Shown here: in pieces, positions 17,417 to 36,865 of the stretch
Layout of the letters: each line of letters begins with the position of its first letter
Position numbering within the stretch: the first letter of the stretch is position 1
Assembly: GCA_020536535.1 (NCBI GenBank)
Contig: JAHLWZ010000966.1
Location: 1-36,865, forward strand
Direction of reading: 5' to 3'
DNA: 36,865 nucleotides
Source: Pelomyxa schiedti
Lineage: Eukaryota > Protista > Evosea
Notes under the pieces: model-generated
The model's input: only the letters and a program-made list of their open reading frames with translations
Database searches by the model: none
What the model was told of the DNA's origin: nothing
Program-made: the position numbers and the translations under genes

Positions 17417-18122
17417 CTACAGTGCGGCATACTGCTTAATTACAGCCTCCTGCTCAGCAGTCTCTATGGAATTCGGGCGCGAACGGCGGACCATTTGTAT
17501 TGCTTCAGGACCTTCTAGCCCAAGCAAGTGAACGAGGCAGCATGCCAAGAGGGTTCCAGTACGCCCAAGGCCTGCTGCACAATGTATGGCCACTTTCTAT
17601 TTTGTGTGTTGTGGGCCATTATGGTAAATCCCATTTTTGTGGGTATGGGTGAAAGTGAAGTGATAAAGGGTTGTGGTTAATGGCAAAGTAAGAGGAGGGG
17701 GAAGGAAGGTCTTATTTGAGGGAACCTGGTTTTTGCCCATGCATTCGTCCACAAATGCAATGATCTCTTGTATTTGGGCAATAGTGGGAGCAATCATATC
17801 CGGCTTTGAGAACAAAATGAGTACAACAAAAGGAGCGGGCAGCGCAAACATACGACATCAACGAATTTGTGGGTGATCCCTGGGGGCACAGGAACATTGA
17901 AAGAAGTCAGAGACACCACGTTGCTCACTCCCTAATTATGGGTAATTCATTGAATGACCCAACTAAACAAGCAATACCCAAAAAAAATAAAAGAAAACCC
18001 CTGACAAAAGACGGAAAAACCGCCACCTGTGACAACAACCAATCGAAATTCTCAGGGCGAGTTGGATAAGCCATTCCAGCCAACTCGGGAAGCACAAAAG
18101 AGAAGTTGTTTGGTTCCACCAT
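17417..18122 (-). CDS. Dual-specificity protein phosphatase, DUSP23-like
   Basis: MVEPNNFSFVLPELAGMAYP N-terminus, DMIAPT general-acid loop, catalytic HCAAGLGRTG, and VRRSRPNSIETAEQE. Stop TAG at 17417-17419. Confidence 0.88.
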
Positions 18123-18609: not shown

Positions 18610-20626
18610 ATGTTGAAGCACATACCAAACCGTTCGTTGTACGATGAGCTCAAGACAAAATTCCCTGGTTGTGACAACGTATGGAAGTGGTTCTTATCTC
18701 TAAACGAAAATCCTCGTCCTTCTGGACACACAGAGGTTTGTTGCCTTTAAGTTTCCTGGCTTGCCTATTAAAATGTTACGCTTGCTTTTTCAACTAGGCT
18801 GCTACCCATTGGATTGCCCAAATCGCAACAAGAATACACCCAGATGCTACAGTGAAAACTGATTCAGTGGGAAACGTCTGTTTGAGCATTCCGGCGTCCA
18901 AGTTGGCCACTCTCTGATAAGCTATTAAATGCTAACCACAGTAAAAGGGGAAAAGAGCACTTACCTGCAATTGTTCTTCAAACTCATTTGGACATGGTGC
19001 CAACAACTACTCGGCCGGGCTTCGACTTCACCCGTGACTTGATTGTAATGCTCCGCCTACTTTCTTCGTATTGCTTAATATTTTGGAAGGATATGTACCT
19101 TGAGGGAAACTTTCTCCGGGCACGGCAAACAACACTTGGGGCTGATGATGGCAGTGGAGTAGCTGTTACATTGGCTCTTGCAGAGGATCCAACCCTTGAC
19201 CATGCACCTTTGGAGGTTTATAGTGCGTGCTATTCTCGAAATTCTCATTTTTTGTGTATAGCTGCTTTTCACCGTTGATGAAGAAACTGGCCTTATCGGA
19301 GCCTGTGCATTGAAACAGGGAGAACTACTTACCGCGAAGGCAAAATACCTTATCAATGTGGATTCCGAAGAATTTGGAGAAATTTGCCTTAGCTGTGCAG
19401 GTTCGACAGTCTTCCCATTTCGCTCCATTTGACTGATTGTTGTGGTATAGGGGGAGCCAATCGTCACCTCAGATTCCCAATGCAGCGGTCTCCGCTTCCT
19501 GTGGGTTGGAAGTGTGCCAAAGTTAGCATCAATATGTTCAAAGGAGGGCACAGTGGTTGCGGTACCCAATACTTTGAAATAGTTAAAACTTATGTACCCA
19601 AAGATATTCATCTCGGACGTGCAAATGCAATCAAGTGGATAGCTTACATGCTCTCGGAAAATGCAAGTGCTATTCAAGGTATGATCCGCTTTCTTTATGT
19701 CTCTATTGTAAGATAGTGTACAGGCACACCTTTCCGTATCTGCTCGTTGAGTGGAGGCAATGCCCACAATGCAGTTCCTTCCCAAGCTGAAGTAGAGTTT
19801 GCTGTCCCAGAAGAGAAATACCACGATTTTATCAGTGGATTGACAACGATTTTTGATGCACTTATTGCCAGGTGAGAAAAGCGCTTTGGCACTCGGTAAT
19901 TAAGTAACAATGTCCCAAGGTGGAAACATGTAGAGACCAAACCACCCCAGCTTTTACTGGAAGGTGCCACATTCGACTACGCCCTTACATTCTCGTCTTC
20001 GCGAACGGCATGCAGGATACTGGAATGCATTCACCATGGTGTTTTCTCATGGAGTGAGCACATTGAAACTCTCGTAGAGACATCGCAGAGCTTGTCCATT
20101 GTCCGCATGGAGAGGGGCTGCAATGAGATGTTCGTTGTGGTATGGTTGAATGTTTTCACTTGTCATATGATCTTGACCTCCGCCAAGGTATTTGCCAGGT
20201 CATCACACCCTACCGCTCTTGGGCCTGTTCACAAAACTTTGGAGTCTATAACAGCTCTATATGGAGGAAGCATTGAAGTGCATGGAACTGGTTTGTACAA
20301 ACCCATTTAAACGCAACAGTATAACTAATGTATTCCAAAACAAAAAAGACCTTGCAGGTTGGCCTGCAGAGCCAAATTCCAAATTAGCACGCACAGCAGT
20401 AAGTGTTTTTAAAAGTACCTATAGCGCTGAGCCCAAAGTGACATCAATCCACGCTGGGCTGGAATGTGGTGTGATCATGTCCAAGTTTCCAGATAATGAC
20501 CTGGAAGCAATATCCGTTGGTCCCACCGTTCTGCACCCACATACAACAGACGAGGCCCTGGATGTTCCTTCCACATGCAAACTATACCACTACATGGTCA
20601 ACCTCATACAAGCCCTTTCCAATTAA
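18610..20626 (+). CDS. pepD: Aminoacyl-histidine (Xaa-His) dipeptidase, peptidase M20 PepD type, multi-exon
   Basis: PRPSGH, LQTHLDMV, TTLGADDGSG, FTVDEETGLIGA, INVDSEE, GGHSG/DIHLGRANAIK, SIHAGLECG and SVGPTVLHPHTTDE. Confidence 0.9.
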
Positions 20627-20771
20627 CACCTCTATTTGTTATTAAACCAAAACGGAAAAAAAAGAATGTAATTTGACAGGCAGTGGTTTATTAACAAAAC
20701 GCAGCTTTGGCGACAAACTCGTTTAACGGTTCCCTTGTGGAAGGGCGTTTTTTTTTTTTTTACTTTTTAAA

Positions 20772-20931
20772 GGGGCAGCGAAGATCGCTAACCCCAACGA
20801 GACAGAAATTGTGTACTAGGAATCCCCTTTCGGAGACCCATACAGATTCCTCACACTAGAGTGCGAAGTGCAAAAAATCCAGTACACCTCGCTCCCTTAT
20901 TGATCAGAGGAGGTGAGTACCAGGTAAGTAT
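20772..20931 (-). ncRNA. U1: U1 spliceosomal snRNA (canonical 5' end)
   Basis: 160 nt. 5' AUACUUACCUG; helix H GUACU/AGUAC; SL1 CACCUC-CUCU[GAUCAAUAAG]GGAG-C-GAGGUG; SL2 with loop UCGCACUCU; SL3 GGGUCUCC[GAAA]GGGGAUUC; Sm site AAUUUCUG; SL4 GGGGUUAGCG..CGCUGCCCC. Confidence 0.93.
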
Positions 20932-20985
20932 GAAGATTATTCTTCCATAGGCCCGCGGAAGGTCAAGGGGTCCTTCGACTGGGAA

Positions 20986-20993
20986 TTGTGGGA
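20986..20993 (-). promoter_or_regulatory. DUSE-like snRNA upstream element (TCCCACAA) of the canonical U1
   Basis: Matches the Dictyostelium element [A/T]CCCA[C/T]AA and starts 62 nt upstream of the U1 5' end at 20931. Confidence 0.8.
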
Positions 20994-21021
20994 CAAGAGA
21001 TCCCAAAGTTTTGGCTTTTCA

Positions 21022-21029
21022 ACCCATAA
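21022..21029 (+). promoter_or_regulatory. DUSE-like snRNA upstream element (ACCCATAA) of the variant U1
   Basis: Same consensus; starts 62 nt upstream of the variant U1 5' end at 21084. Confidence 0.8.
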
Positions 21030-21083
21030 TAGTCTCCAAAAAAACCCTGTACAAATCGCCGAACTTGACAAAATAACTCTTTC

Positions 21084-21244
21084 ATACATACCTGACTGTG
21101 CGCATCCTTGATCATCAAGGAGTGGTGCGCTGTTGTAAGCTTTCCATTTGCACTCTATGGGAGGCTTCGGCATGGATCTCCGAAAGGGGAGCCCAGCAGT
21201 GTAATTTTTGTTCAGCTGGAGCCTGCGTCTCTGTGCGCGACTCC
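21084..21244 (+). ncRNA. U1: Variant U1 snRNA (5' AUACAUACCUG)
   Basis: 161 nt. 5' AUACAUACCUG; helix H ACUGU/GCAGU; SL1 GCGCAUC-CUU[GAUCAUCAAG]GAG-U-GGUGCGC; SL2 AAGCUUUCCAU[UUGCACUCU]AUGGGAGGCUU; SL3 CUCC[GAAA]GGGG; Sm site AAUUUUUG; SL4 GGAG...CUCC. Confidence 0.9.
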
Positions 21245-21629
21245 TTAAATTAAAACACAAGAAAGATCGCAGAAATACTGGAAGTAGATCATTTTCACTT
21301 TCGGTTTCAGGTACGCAAGTACTGCACCCCAACGAACCGATGATACTTGGACACCTTGATGGAGAAGATGAACCCCGTTTGATTTCAGAGATTGGTAGCT
21401 CGGGTGTCTGGAACCTCAATCAGATTTCCGACTCGAACCTTCCACTTCGGACTCACCCATCTCTCTTTGGTAATATTCCAGGCATCAAGAAGGGCGAAAA
21501 AAACCAAGCACGCGTGATCGGTCCTTTCAACGCAATGGAAAACCGGCAGCGAAAAAAAATGTCCTTTTCGTTTTGTCCAACATTTTTAAGGAGTGTCTGT
21601 TGAAAGAATTCCCCCAAAACAAAGGAAAA

Positions 21630-23943
21630 ATGACAACAGCACAGAGGCCTGTGTATGGTGAAGTAGTAATAGTGGCTGGCCAGAGTGGCGAGACAGGTAA
21701 CTGTTCCTCTAATCACGGCCCAGTTCAGAGCTGTCATTACATAATGCTCTACCGCCTCCCTTGAGTTCGAAGCAGGCCTCAACACTAACTGTTACAGATG
21801 TGGCTCAGGAGGCAGTGAATACACTGATGGTGGAGGGATTTGAGGCGTCCATACCTTTCTTGAGGGCATACATGAGAAATGGAAAGGTACATACCCGGTA
21901 GTGAGGGAATTTGAGTATCAACATGAGCATTTAGAATGCGGCCGCCGCAGCTGCCTCTGTAACTGCGGGAAGAATGGTACCTCTTGGAGGAGTGTTTATC
22001 AAGCAATTTATAGAAAGAGAGAGGAACGTGACTGCACACCTCATACATGAATATGCGCCTAGCACAAAGGCCGAGTTTGAAACCTATGTGCCAAGGGCCT
22101 CGGTACTGTTGATAAATACTACATTGATGCTTTCCTGGGACTGGGTGGAGCAGATTGCAGATCATGCAAGGCTACTGAATCCCAACATTATAATAGTTGC
22201 TGGCGGAATTGCCGTGCTCAAGTAAGATTCAAATCCTTGAAGTATGTCATTAATTCTTGCAACAAAAGGTTTTACAAAGTGCGGCAATTTATAGATGCTG
22301 GAAAACTACCTTCAAATGCTAATGTCTTGCGGGAAAACTTGAGACTCCTTTTCTTAAAGGAATACCATTCCTCCATTGATTTCTTTATTGCCAGTAATTC
22401 AGGAGAATATACTCTACTTTCCCTGCTTGATTCCTTGGCTAAGGTTGAGCAGTGAATTTAACAATCCCGTTCACATGTTTTTAGAGTTCAGAAGATTGGA
22501 AAACACTTCCAGGTGTATGTTGGCAGGAACCAAATGCGGTCCAATGGAATATGAATCCTAGTAAGGGAAAAAGTTCACCTGCCTTCTTTTTCTAACTCCC
22601 ACATAGTGGGCAACGAGCCCATTTCAGATGTAGAAGTCGACTGGGCTAAGGAAATAATTCCAAATCCTGAGCGCATCATCTTCCCTATTCAAGTGGGATA
22701 TGGTTGTCCATTCAAGTAAGAAGGAGTTAATAGTATTACGTCCTTACTTGTTTGTAGGTGCGGCTTTTGTGATTTCCATTTTATTGCCTCAAAGCCTCAT
22801 CAATCGGATCTCGCTTCTGTCATTCGAACTCTGAAGTCTGTACCACTTATCGAAGGGGTCAGACGGGTGTGTTTCGTGAGTCCTTATGTGAACTCAGTCA
22901 TGGCAGGTCTTTTTCACAAATGAAAATTTATTGTTGAACAGCAAACAAAGCCATGAACTGTTGCAGGCAATAATTGATGCAGACCTGCATTTGAGATGGA
23001 CTGGTTTTGTAAGAATTGATGCTGTTCAGACAAGTGATATTGTTGACCTTATTGTCCAATCGGGCTGTGAGAAAGTCTTGATTGGAGTGGAAAGTGGAGA
23101 TGAAACAGTGTTGAGGAATATGAACAAGCACTGTGCACCAGCGGTTTGTTATCGAACTGAGTTCTTTTCATTTAATTTGCTTTTTATCTAGCTGATAACC
23201 CGAGCACTTTCCCTTCTATTGGCAACGAAAATTGCAGTTCACACGTACTTACTTGTTGGTTTTCCAGGAGAAACTGAAGTATGAGTTTCCTCGTGGCCTA
23301 TGTTTCACTCAAATATGATTTCAAAAAAGGGAACCATTGCCAACACTGTCCGTCTATTCAATGAACTTCCTGAAGGAGGCTTACTTATGTTCAAGGTAGT
23401 CTCTCATCATGTGTAACTCATTCTTTTTCAGTTTCCATATTTATGTATTATTCAAGTGAATAAACTATACAAACCTCATAAACCAATTGCTAACAAACGA
23501 TTTGGCGAATTGGCCAATTTCCTAGGCCATCCCACTTATCGTGGCGCCCCTGTCGCCGATTTCAATGTTCCCGGAGCAAAGAGTGGGATTCGGACTTGTG
23601 GGAGTGACAAACAAGTGGCGCCACACCACGATGGACTACGCCACGGCCCACGCACTTGCTCAGAAAATCCCGGACATGATGAAGTCCACTTTGACGTCAG
23701 TCGTGCCAATTGACCAGATCTTCCCAGTATGGGACTGGGAGAAGATGCGCCAGCTCAATCTGGCCAGGAACGTGGTGTGTTTTCGGCTTCGTTCCGTTTT
23801 GTTTTTTTTTTCTCGCTGTTTGGACAACTTGGACTGATCATAGCTAGTTGAGATTCAGGCAGAGGGGACTTCAAGAGCAGCCGGTTGACCCAAGGACAGA
23901 TGACCAGCTCTGGAGTGCCTTGGAAGCCAACCTCTATCCATAA
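21630..23943 (+). CDS. Cobalamin-binding radical SAM protein (class B methyltransferase-like), multi-exon
   Basis: B12-binding-like region VPLGGVFI..LINTTL..NPNIIIVAGG..IDFFIASNSGE. CxxxCxxC = GCPFK/CGFC across intron 22716-22757. Barrel motifs WTGFVRID, SGCEKVLIGVESGDETVLRNMNK and LLVGFPGET. C-terminal FGLVGVTNKWRHTTMD. Probable last exon ends ...SALEANLYP stop. Confidence 0.85.
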
Positions 23944-24705: not shown

Positions 24706-26146
24706 GTTGTTGTTGTTGGTCTAAACATAGGCATTTGGTCTGCCATTTTTCCTACAAAAGTTGTCGAAAATTACGAAGAGTGGCTCAAAAACGACCCCCA
24801 ACTCTCTGCTACTATTCATGGGCTGAATGCACTCTTGACAATCCTGAAAGGGAGCACAGGTTCCTCACGTCACATATGCACTACTTAGTTAACACTTTCT
24901 TTTTCTCTGTCTCTCTCTCAGCAACAACTATTATGGGGTTGAGACAAGAACTTGATGAAGAGGCAGCAAAACTATTCGAGAGCAACAAAGCAACTATATC
25001 TGTTGCTTCAGGTCTTTTACTAAACTTCCTCTGCTATTCTGAACTTTTACCACAGGATGTGCTTTATTTCTTCAATTTGTTACACATATTGCCCTTGATG
25101 TGGAGGTAAGTTCCACTTGAATCAGTAGTTGTTAAAGTATTTAGGATATTGAACAATGCAAAGCTAAATTAGTTGAAAGAGCAGAGCTACTTATAACAAG
25201 AATGTCCGAAGCAAGAGACAGAATTGCAACCATAGCATATCCCTTCATTACTGACGGCTCAGTATATTCCCTGCAAACATACTAATCAGCCAACCAAATA
25301 AAGGTTTTCCTCGTACATGGCTCCTCTAAAGTTGTACTGAAGCTGCTGCAAAGAGCAGCCCAGGAACATATCTCCTTCCGTGTAATCTGCACCGAATCGA
25401 GACCTGGGTCCTCTGGGTATTCCACTCGCCGATCTTTGTTGCATAAATCCACACCTCGACTGCAGCTAATCGCCACACTCCACATACAAGATGTACTTTT
25501 GCCTTGATCTAATCTTCTTATGGCGAGGAAGATTCAACTTCGCGCGGAGTCTTCAAGCATTGACTATTCCCGTTGAAATCATTTTGGATTCTGCAGTTGC
25601 CGCAGTTATGGACAAAGTTGATGCAGTTATTTGCGGTTCTGAAGCTATTGTTGAAAATGGTGGCATAATTAATAAGGTATGCCTTATCTATTCTACATAT
25701 TTTTTTTCCTACTAAAAAAGCAACAACCAAAAGATCGGGACATTTCAAATCTCCATTGTTGCCAAAGCATTCAATAAACCGTTCTATGTTGCTGCTGAAA
25801 GCTTCAAATTTATCCGATTGTACCCACTCACCCAATCAGAGATACCACAGGTTCGAACCCTTTTTTTATACCTATCTTTCTCACACTTACACAGAGAGCG
25901 TCCCCTTTTACCGCCTGTGCCGCATGCTCCCCAGCACTGCCGTCCTCAATTCAAGTTCATTTCCCACTTCCCTAACACTGACTGACACCACTAAAAACAA
26001 CTACATAGGTTTTCAATCCACATAGTGACTACACACCACCAAACTACATCACTTTACTCTTTACTGAGCTTGGTGTTCTCACCCCTTCTGCCGTTTCTGA
26101 CGAACTCATTAAGCTGTCATCACTATCCGCACCAACCAACTCTTGA
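24140..26146 (+). CDS. EIF2B1: Translation initiation factor eIF-2B subunit alpha, multi-exon
   Basis: [78 protein letters not shown] and [30 protein letters not shown]. Start inferred as ATG A followed by intron 24144-24327. Confidence 0.9.
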
Positions 26147-34932: not shown

Positions 34933-36865
34933 ATGCGCAAGCGTTCCAACATAGCATCGCAGAGCCCACCGCTCCCGGCCCCCCCGTCGCCCGCCCGCTC
35001 GCCCTCGCCGTCCCCCTCGCCCCCGCCCCCTCCCCCGCCGCTTCCCTCCACCTCCCCGCCTCCCCCGCTGCTCCTGCACCCAGCAGCCGCCGCCGCCTCG
35101 TCCTCGTCGTCCTCCGCCTCGGGCTCCTACACTCCACATTCCCAACATACACCTCTCCATGATGTGGCCTGGCCTGAAGTTGGTTTTCGACTTCAGGAAG
35201 GTAGGCCATTGTTTTCGTTATGATGCGGTTGTCAGTATTGGGAGGGGAAATTGGCCTTGATTCATCAATTCTTGTTGTTCCTTCCACTTTCGGGAAGGCA
35301 AAGAACAGGGAATCGTTGAAATGTGTGCTTTGTTAACCAGTGGAACATATTGCATAATATGATGGCTGACAGCTTAGGTAGGGTTTTCCACGCCGCAAAG
35401 CTGATGCCATCTGGTCCTGGGGCTGATTTGGATTTGCATGAAAGAATTGCTGCCTCTACATCATCAGGGGTCAACATTGGAATTGGGCCTAGTTTTTTCC
35501 GGTATTTGCTCAGAAGGGTCTTCAGGGCCTCTCCATCTGATGATATCAGACCCAGGAGAGGGGCCCAGAATTCCTTAGTTATTTCATCTTTCCTCAGGGA
35601 GTTACTGGTCAGGTTTTGGGTTGTGGGGTCCAACATTTGAGCATAAAGACTGCTTTTTGCTGGAATCTCAGGGAATGGTGTGCGCTTCTTCTTGGGGATT
35701 TTGATGTCTAATTGGGTTTTAACCCATGTGATTGCCTCTTGTATTTGGTCGAACAGATCTGCTACCTCCTTGTTTCTTTCAATGATGGTCAAGGCTTCTG
35801 TTGCAGATGCTTTCTGCAACTTAAGCAATGCTGAGAGAGTGTCCTGCTGTGTGTTGTTGTGGTTGTTCATCGTTTGCCATGCAGCTTTGGTTAGTAGCCT
35901 CTTGTAGGTCTTCCAGCATGCCACTGGATTGTCAGGGAGGCTTTCTGGAAGGATTCTCAGGAGGTGCAACTTGTATGCTGGGTTTTCAAAAGTCCATCTT
36001 GGGGGTCTGTCCTTGTTCCATTCAGTCTTGATTCTAGTGGTGACTGTCAGCAAGATTGGGAAGTGATCTGAGGCGTTGGATTCCCAGGTGGTAACCTGGG
36101 AAATAAGGTTTTTGGCTTTGGTGCATGCGGCATGATCTAAGGTGTAGCAGGTGCTGTTTTGAATGAATGTAGGAGACTTGGTTTCAACTGGGTGAACATC
36201 CCAGTTTTCCATGGTTGACATTGCTGCTTGTCTCAGGTTTGCTGACCTTTCAAAAGAAGGGTGTTGGTGTTTGAAGAGTGGGATATTGAAATCCCCTATC
36301 AGGATGGTTGCCGATGTGTTACTTGGGGTGTATCTTTTGTTGGTGTGTTCCCAGAAGTCCGCCGCTTCTGGGTGGCCTAAGTATGGGGCATAGACACCGA
36401 TGATGTCTAAGGCTTGATTCTCCCAGAGAATTTGAACCTTGGACATTCGGCCTTCCATCAGGACTTCGGGTTGTGTGGGGTTGAGGGATTTGAGAATCCC
36501 TATTGCCACACCATCTGTGTTGTGGCGTCCGTTCATGAACCACCAGTATTTTGGGTTCAGGTTGGAGGTGTTGTAGTGTGCTTGTTCTGTGGAGTGTGTT
36601 TCTGTAATTACAAGGATATGTGTGTTGATTGCGTTGATTGTGTCTTTGATTTGTTTGAGTTTGGGTGTTGGTGCTGTGGCTAGCCCCTGCACGTTCCACG
36701 ATAATACTCTTAAGCTGGTCATTGCTTATTAGGTGGTTTTATCGGGGGATGAATTGATTTACCTGCAGAAATTGGAAATGCAAAAAAGCACATTGTAACT
36801 TGTACAGTGACCAAAGGACTGAAGGATATAGTTCTACTGGGCTGGGCTGTGATACCACTACAATG
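34933..36865 (+). CDS. Partial gene with Pro/Ser-rich N-terminus and a C2-like domain; long intron 35201-36768
   Basis: Exon ends ...VAWPEVGFRLQE-G|gtaggc and acceptor ctgcag|AA restores the frame: EIGNAKKHIVTCTVTKGLKDIVLLGWAVIPLQ, open to the window end and reminiscent of C2-domain LGxxxIPL strands. Start uncertain. Confidence 0.55.
35201..36722 (-). mobile_element. Truncated non-LTR retrotransposon (LINE, L1/Tx1-like) ORF2: APE endonuclease intact, RT frameshifted and truncated
   Basis: EN motifs SWNVQGL, TETH, GVYAP, GDFN, LDH and SDH. RT-proximal KSAPGPDGI. After a frameshift near 35325: FNDSLFFAFPK..RPISPPNTDNRIITKTMA, then homology stops. No YADD motif or poly(A). Confidence 0.9.

Follow-up and report, generated by a model that had tools for sequence, protein, structure and literature searches.

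Position 5 of U1 snRNA faces intron position +4. Recoding of the ACUUAC reader has been reported in amoebae by Roy and Bowser (bioRxiv, 10.1101/2022.06.08.495308), who found that a standard ACUUAC and an ACAUAC U1 coexist in Physarum polycephalum, where GUAUGU is the commonest donor. In the same preprint, Mastigamoeba balamuthi has a single candidate U1 with the reader ACGUAC, which fits a GUGCGC consensus, and Entamoeba, with an intron-poor genome and uniform GUUUGU donors, has a single U1 gene reading ACAAAC. These authors pose, as still open, the questions of why the U1 reader so seldom coevolves with donors and of how such coevolution came about in a few amoebae; they do not mention Pelomyxa (10.1101/2022.06.08.495308).

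We analysed a window of 36,865 nucleotides (positions 1 to 36,865 of contig JAHLWZ010000966.1) from Pelomyxa schiedti, the assembly of which comprises 52.4 Mb in 5337 scaffolds with 149,016 introns, or 7.43 per gene (PMC8887013). The window contains a U1 gene with the reader ACAUAC (A5) beside a canonical ACUUAC gene (U5). Physarum has the same two readers side by side; the preprint gives them two sentences, without a third class, a cassette or copy numbers, and the donors of Pelomyxa, unlike those of Physarum, lack a strong GUAUGU consensus. Mastigamoeba, also an archamoeba, shares the ACGUAC reader with a further Pelomyxa class (G5), but G5 is a two-copy minority in Pelomyxa. Entamoeba, again an archamoeba, has A at position 5, which coevolved there with the donors, but it differs from Pelomyxa in its single gene, a second change at position 6 and the uniformity of its donors. 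Human variant U1s and animal isoforms resemble the Pelomyxa genes in being paralogous U1 genes of differing sequence. The human variants are of low abundance or stage-specific. Two U1 versions in Fritillaria have identical 5' ends (PMC13326754), in contrast to those of Pelomyxa. U11 of the minor spliceosome is comparable to A5 as a second U1-like RNA for another donor type, and in Pelomyxa it is a separate single locus on contig C820.

The preliminary description of this DNA had taken the ACUUAC reader to be nearly invariant, a view that overlooks exceptions already published for this clade, such as Physarum with both ACAUAC and ACUUAC. A recoded U1 reader is thus a phenomenon already described. 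The Pelomyxa set is real, conserved and unusual, and what appears to be new is the coexistence of A5, U5 and G5, the 1:1 cassette of A5 and U5 and an uninformative donor +4. A literature search, mostly outside subscription journals, found no paper on Pelomyxa U1 genes.

Results

The A5 gene occupies positions 21084-21245 on the plus strand of the window. The Rfam U1 model (RF00003) matched it at 21084-21247(+) with 75.1 bits over model positions 1-166; our own model gave 148 bits, and the fold z-score was -2.1. The canonical U5 gene lies head to head with it on the minus strand (20769-20931) and matched Rfam over its full length with 72.4 bits. Both scores exceed the RF00003 gathering score of 69.5, and the spacer between the genes (20932-21083), a putative bidirectional promoter, measures 152 nucleotides, as had been reported for two divergent U1 RNAs. 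Two PSE-like elements stand back to back in this spacer, CCCATAA for the A5 gene (21023-21029, +) and CCCACAA for the canonical gene (20986-20992, -), each at -61.

All U1 parts tested were present in the A5 RNA: helix H, with its 5' strand at 21095-21099 and partner at 21196-21200, SL1-3, the 10-nucleotide U1-70K loop of SL1 (21110-21119), the U1A loop of SL2 with UGCAC (21147-21155), the Sm site (21203-21210) and SL4 (21218-21244), all on the plus strand. The corresponding minus-strand parts of the canonical gene are the arm at 20931-20921, loop I at 20905-20896, the Sm site at 20810-20803 and SL4 at 20795-20772. Paired helix H and SL1 stems, the 10-nucleotide U1-70K loop, the Sm site and SL4 are therefore kept by both genes, in agreement with the preliminary description. 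The 5' splice-site pairing arm of the A5 gene (21084-21094, +) departs from the canonical reader in having A at position 5 (21088), opposite intron +4, whereas the neighbouring gene has U. Nine other full-length genomic copies share this A, and contigs (not raw reads) of two DNA runs from the same sample, possibly the very source of the assembly, span 21088 with no difference listed. We also considered whether the A5 RNA could be U11 (RF00548). This was rejected, as the sole U11 match in the genome is C820:10548-10683, and the A5 RNA has a U1A loop and scores as U1.

Among the surroundings of the pair, an M20-family dipeptidase gene model with 11 exons (18610-20626, +) ends 143 nucleotides from the 3' end of the canonical U1. 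Gene models were also obtained for a dual-specificity phosphatase (17417-17851, -) and an eIF-2B subunit (25491-26146, +). A spliced antisense transcript seen in RNA contigs (21646-22467, -), whose introns are 21983-22039 and 22236-22309, has stop codons in every frame; it heads towards the A5 gene and overlaps a plus-strand B12-binding radical SAM model (21630-23943). By eye, a 485-aa open reading frame (35265-36722, -) resembles a non-LTR retrotransposon endonuclease and the start of a reverse transcriptase.

Next, a covariance model built from the local copies was run over the genome (52.37 Mb, 5337 contigs), and 27 U1 loci were obtained. The full-length copies comprise 10 A5 (ACAUAC), 8 U5 (ACUUAC) and 2 G5 (ACGUAC; C804 and C919) genes, and position 5 is fixed inside each class (10/10, 8/8 and 2/2, respectively). 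The remaining seven loci are one degenerate copy (C22) and six short ones of about 140 nucleotides (about 22 nucleotides shorter) with G11 changed to A, three of them A5 and three U5, located at C918:62-386, C1151:13641-15473 and C3860:275-415. Just 43 nucleotides separate the short pair on C918, which leaves insufficient room for promoters, and an inverted duplicate is present on C1151. Decay, chimeric amplification or a separate subclass may account for these short copies; for those on C918 and C1151, identity as U11 was rejected. The partner U1 on C22 (L003:1190-1349, -) carries an A5 reader on a canonical-type body, with G11 changed to U, a damaged SL3 and a long branch. It represents either a reader switch or decay, and such a combination of reader and body implies that readers can switch. 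A candidate for a fourth reader, C5 (ACCUAC; C398:634-668), which would be a +4G reader, has a perfect U1-70K loop at U1 spacing, yet it lacks a linked promoter motif and was matched by neither the Pelomyxa model nor Rfam U1. Readers other than U, A and G were not confirmed in the genome.

The three classes are distinct beyond their readers. Once the first 11 nucleotides are set aside, bodies are 72% identical inside A5, 70% inside U5 and 51-55% identical from one class to another. A tree computed from the copies minus the reader separates every class from the others by a branch of moderate support (74/89, 92/94 and 93/92). Helix H is class-diagnostic, one version being common to A5 and G5 and another found in U5, while the A5 copy on C353 has a compensated variant. 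Across 21 copies, helix H is 100% paired, with four of its five pairs changed on both sides. Over the whole structure of these copies, 93% of pair cells are kept, compared with 72% after shuffling and 39-55% with partners slid, and changes on both sides occur in 28 of 37 pairs, partly reflecting between-class divergence. Pairing of helix H at position 12 is of importance for splicing in human cells, where the A12-U122 pair is functional (PMC13500670); the A5 class of Pelomyxa has this A12-U122 pair. Comparison of the copies supports A5 as a U1 variant that has been conserved and retained alongside the canonical one, not as a pseudogene. This part of the preliminary description stood, and its two-U1 system gave way to three reader classes in a multi-copy family. 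Contigs assembled from random-primed RNA libraries cover neither U1 gene of the window, and the expression asserted in that description is accordingly putative.

Could the A5 genes nevertheless be pseudogenes, an assembly error or the product of mixed organisms? Such an explanation can draw on the pooling of seven micromanipulated cells in the assembly and on the seven degenerate or short U1 copies. However, paired positions covary, promoter elements are intact, A5 and U5 genes are physically adjacent, and the two DNA runs agree at 21088. A single U11, one clear U1-C gene, one 18S and near-identical U6 genes indicate that the U1 loci are dispersed paralogs of one genome and not a mixture. GC content and intron size of the G5 contigs also agree with those of the remaining contigs. 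The flanks of different loci are not related, and the pairs show no flanking synteny. We regard this explanation as very improbable and largely refuted.

Seven loci are full-length A5+U5 pairs arranged head to head with spacers of 132-152 nucleotides, and in all eight pairs examined a spacer of this length holds two outward-facing elements back to back. The CCCAYAA element stands between -59 and -63 in every one of the 20 full-length U1 genes (chance, 0.005 per gene) and also lies 5' of U6 genes, as expected of a snRNA-type promoter element that would be active. Apart from it, the upstream spacers of A5 copies are at chance identity (0.32). Distances among A5 and among U5 genes are congruent over the seven pairs (Mantel r 0.69, p 0.0002), indicating that the pair duplicates as one unit. 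Judged from these comparisons, it is a 1:1 bidirectional cassette that has been duplicated at least seven times.

This arrangement also bears on whether the classes are isoforms regulated by life stage (trophozoite versus cyst) or stress, or have a non-splicing role, such as the suppression of premature polyadenylation proposed for human variant U1s. Their class-specific helix H and SL1 could bind different proteins, and human variant U1s are reported to be stage-regulated (PMC5159530). By contrast, there is a single clear U1-C gene, and the short spacer and promoter element common to all classes point to their co-expression. Regulated or non-splicing isoforms are thus an improbable explanation.

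About 20 dispersed U6 genes (L039-L058) are near-identical, unlike the diverged U1 paralogs, and all have CCCAYAA about 60-65 nucleotides upstream. A U6-like RNA on C386 (L059:1501-1609, -), scoring 33.6 bits and so below the cut-off, combines the snRNA promoter element with a changed 5' splice-site box; it is possibly a recoded U6atac. About 90 introns of the genome are of the minor type (PMC10639083).

To describe donors, we used our own two-strand gene model, trained on 135 kb, in which intron +4 was never scored. The model was of order 2, as order 3 overfitted (one of five RNA introns recovered). It recovered three of three sense introns seen in RNA contigs, and its exons matched Pfam families in order (M20 peptidase; B12-binding and radical SAM; eIF-2B); in eIF-2B the profile positions run on without a gap from one side of an intron to the other. 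In 338 predicted introns of 36-80 nucleotides, +4 was U, A, C and G in 44, 23, 22 and 11%, against an intron background of 37, 27, 25 and 11% (p 0.11). Donors carried 0.013 bits of information at +4, against 0.33 bits at +3 and 0.45 at +5, two strongly constrained positions, the latter with G in 43%; the values for +3, +5 and +6 are inflated because these positions were learned in that run. A fully blind run gave +5G in 32-34% against a background of 11-12%, and +4 was equally flat. Among +5G donors, +4 was U in 50, A in 28, C in 13 and G in 8% (p 0.005). The sequence CAG/GTAAGT occurs 291 times genome-wide, without enrichment over a reversed control (298) or expectation (262-347).

The preliminary description had listed 13 donors and proposed an enriched +4U intron class. 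All 13 were also predicted by the +4-blind model, two of them (25106 and 25262) being backed by RNA joints, but the list proved selective. The enrichment was not borne out: +4U is the commonest but lies close to its frequency in introns at large. As estimated from predicted introns, the +4A preference has been lost, U is commonest and a sharp, discrete +4U class is absent. Set against amoebozoan U1s with recoded readers, the A5 change complements the commonest +4 base (U, 44% overall and 50% among +5G donors), and a strong matching donor consensus is absent (0.013 bits at +4). A subset of strong donors selected post hoc (+3R, +5G; n=108) gave a U : A/G : C split of 50:40:10, which equals the 10:8:2 of the gene copies. 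Across all predicted donors the split is 44:34:22, which departs from 10:8:2 (p 3e-12) because +4C makes up 22%. The match in strong donors is a hint only.

Recoding of the major U6 was ruled out, since all 20 U6 copies above the cut-off have ACAGAGA. Loss of METTL16 is an unlikely cause of +4U, as a family match is present on C725 (exon fragments, at family level only).

A flat +4 would likewise be expected if +4 pairing is simply irrelevant. The classes would then be interchangeable functional isoforms that all serve all introns, with A5 fixed by drift in an old duplicate and donors set by exon AG, +5G and short-intron definition. The 0.013 bits at +4 fit such interchangeability, as do a reader switch at C22 and the splicing of +4Y donors with canonical U1 in yeast and Giardia. 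Donors with exon AG also have weaker +5G (27% vs 50%), like a U5/U6 trade-off (PMC9803359). However, a neutral position 5 should vary among copies with saturated spacers, and it is fixed in every class; the confirmed readers are, moreover, limited to U, A and G. Fixation within classes argues against pure neutrality, without proving specialisation, and we consider interchangeable isoforms unlikely, though the strongest of the alternatives.

Discussion

The reading that we favour, and think probable, is that the three U1 snRNPs constitute a co-expressed reader set covering every +4 base. U5, A5 and G5 readers jointly pair all four +4 bases, G by wobble, and at a site that is perfect in all other respects a match at +4 is worth about 4-6 kcal/mol to the reader (pseudouridines left out). 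We infer transcription, snRNP assembly and a preference of each class for its own donors. About 149,000 short, weak-donor introns would be served by three U1 snRNPs differing at position 5, of which U5 would take +4A and, by wobble, +4G, A5 would take +4U, and G5 would take +4C and, by wobble, +4U. Twin promoter elements in the A5+U5 cassette would supply both classes about equally. The best-pairing U1 would bind the donor, after which a single U6 type (ACAGAGA) would take over.

Among the metagenomic matches listed, eukaryotes contain at least one further A5 U1 (L068/L071, 72.6 bits) and at least one G5 U1 (L128, 66.1 bits), implying that position-5 recoding recurs. Their bodies are different, and L068 and L128 have a similar upstream motif, CCATAA near -63. 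Both come from one sample (Ga0209935).

A bolder version of the reader set, which we put forward tentatively and hold to be possible rather than probable, likens it to tRNA isoacceptors. Three dosage-matched readers would split major-class introns by +4 and thereby free this position; the set would be ancestral in Archamoebae, and one reader each would have been kept by Mastigamoeba, as G5, and by Entamoeba, as A5 plus A6. If true, an ancestral set would account for the recoding of a near-invariant reader without passage through a lethal intermediate. Canonical, A5 and G5 readers in one genome offer the intermediate expected from duplication, specialisation and loss. Pelomyxa also provides a natural test of the in vivo selection of intron subsets by U1 base-pairing, a matter of relevance to engineered U1 therapies.
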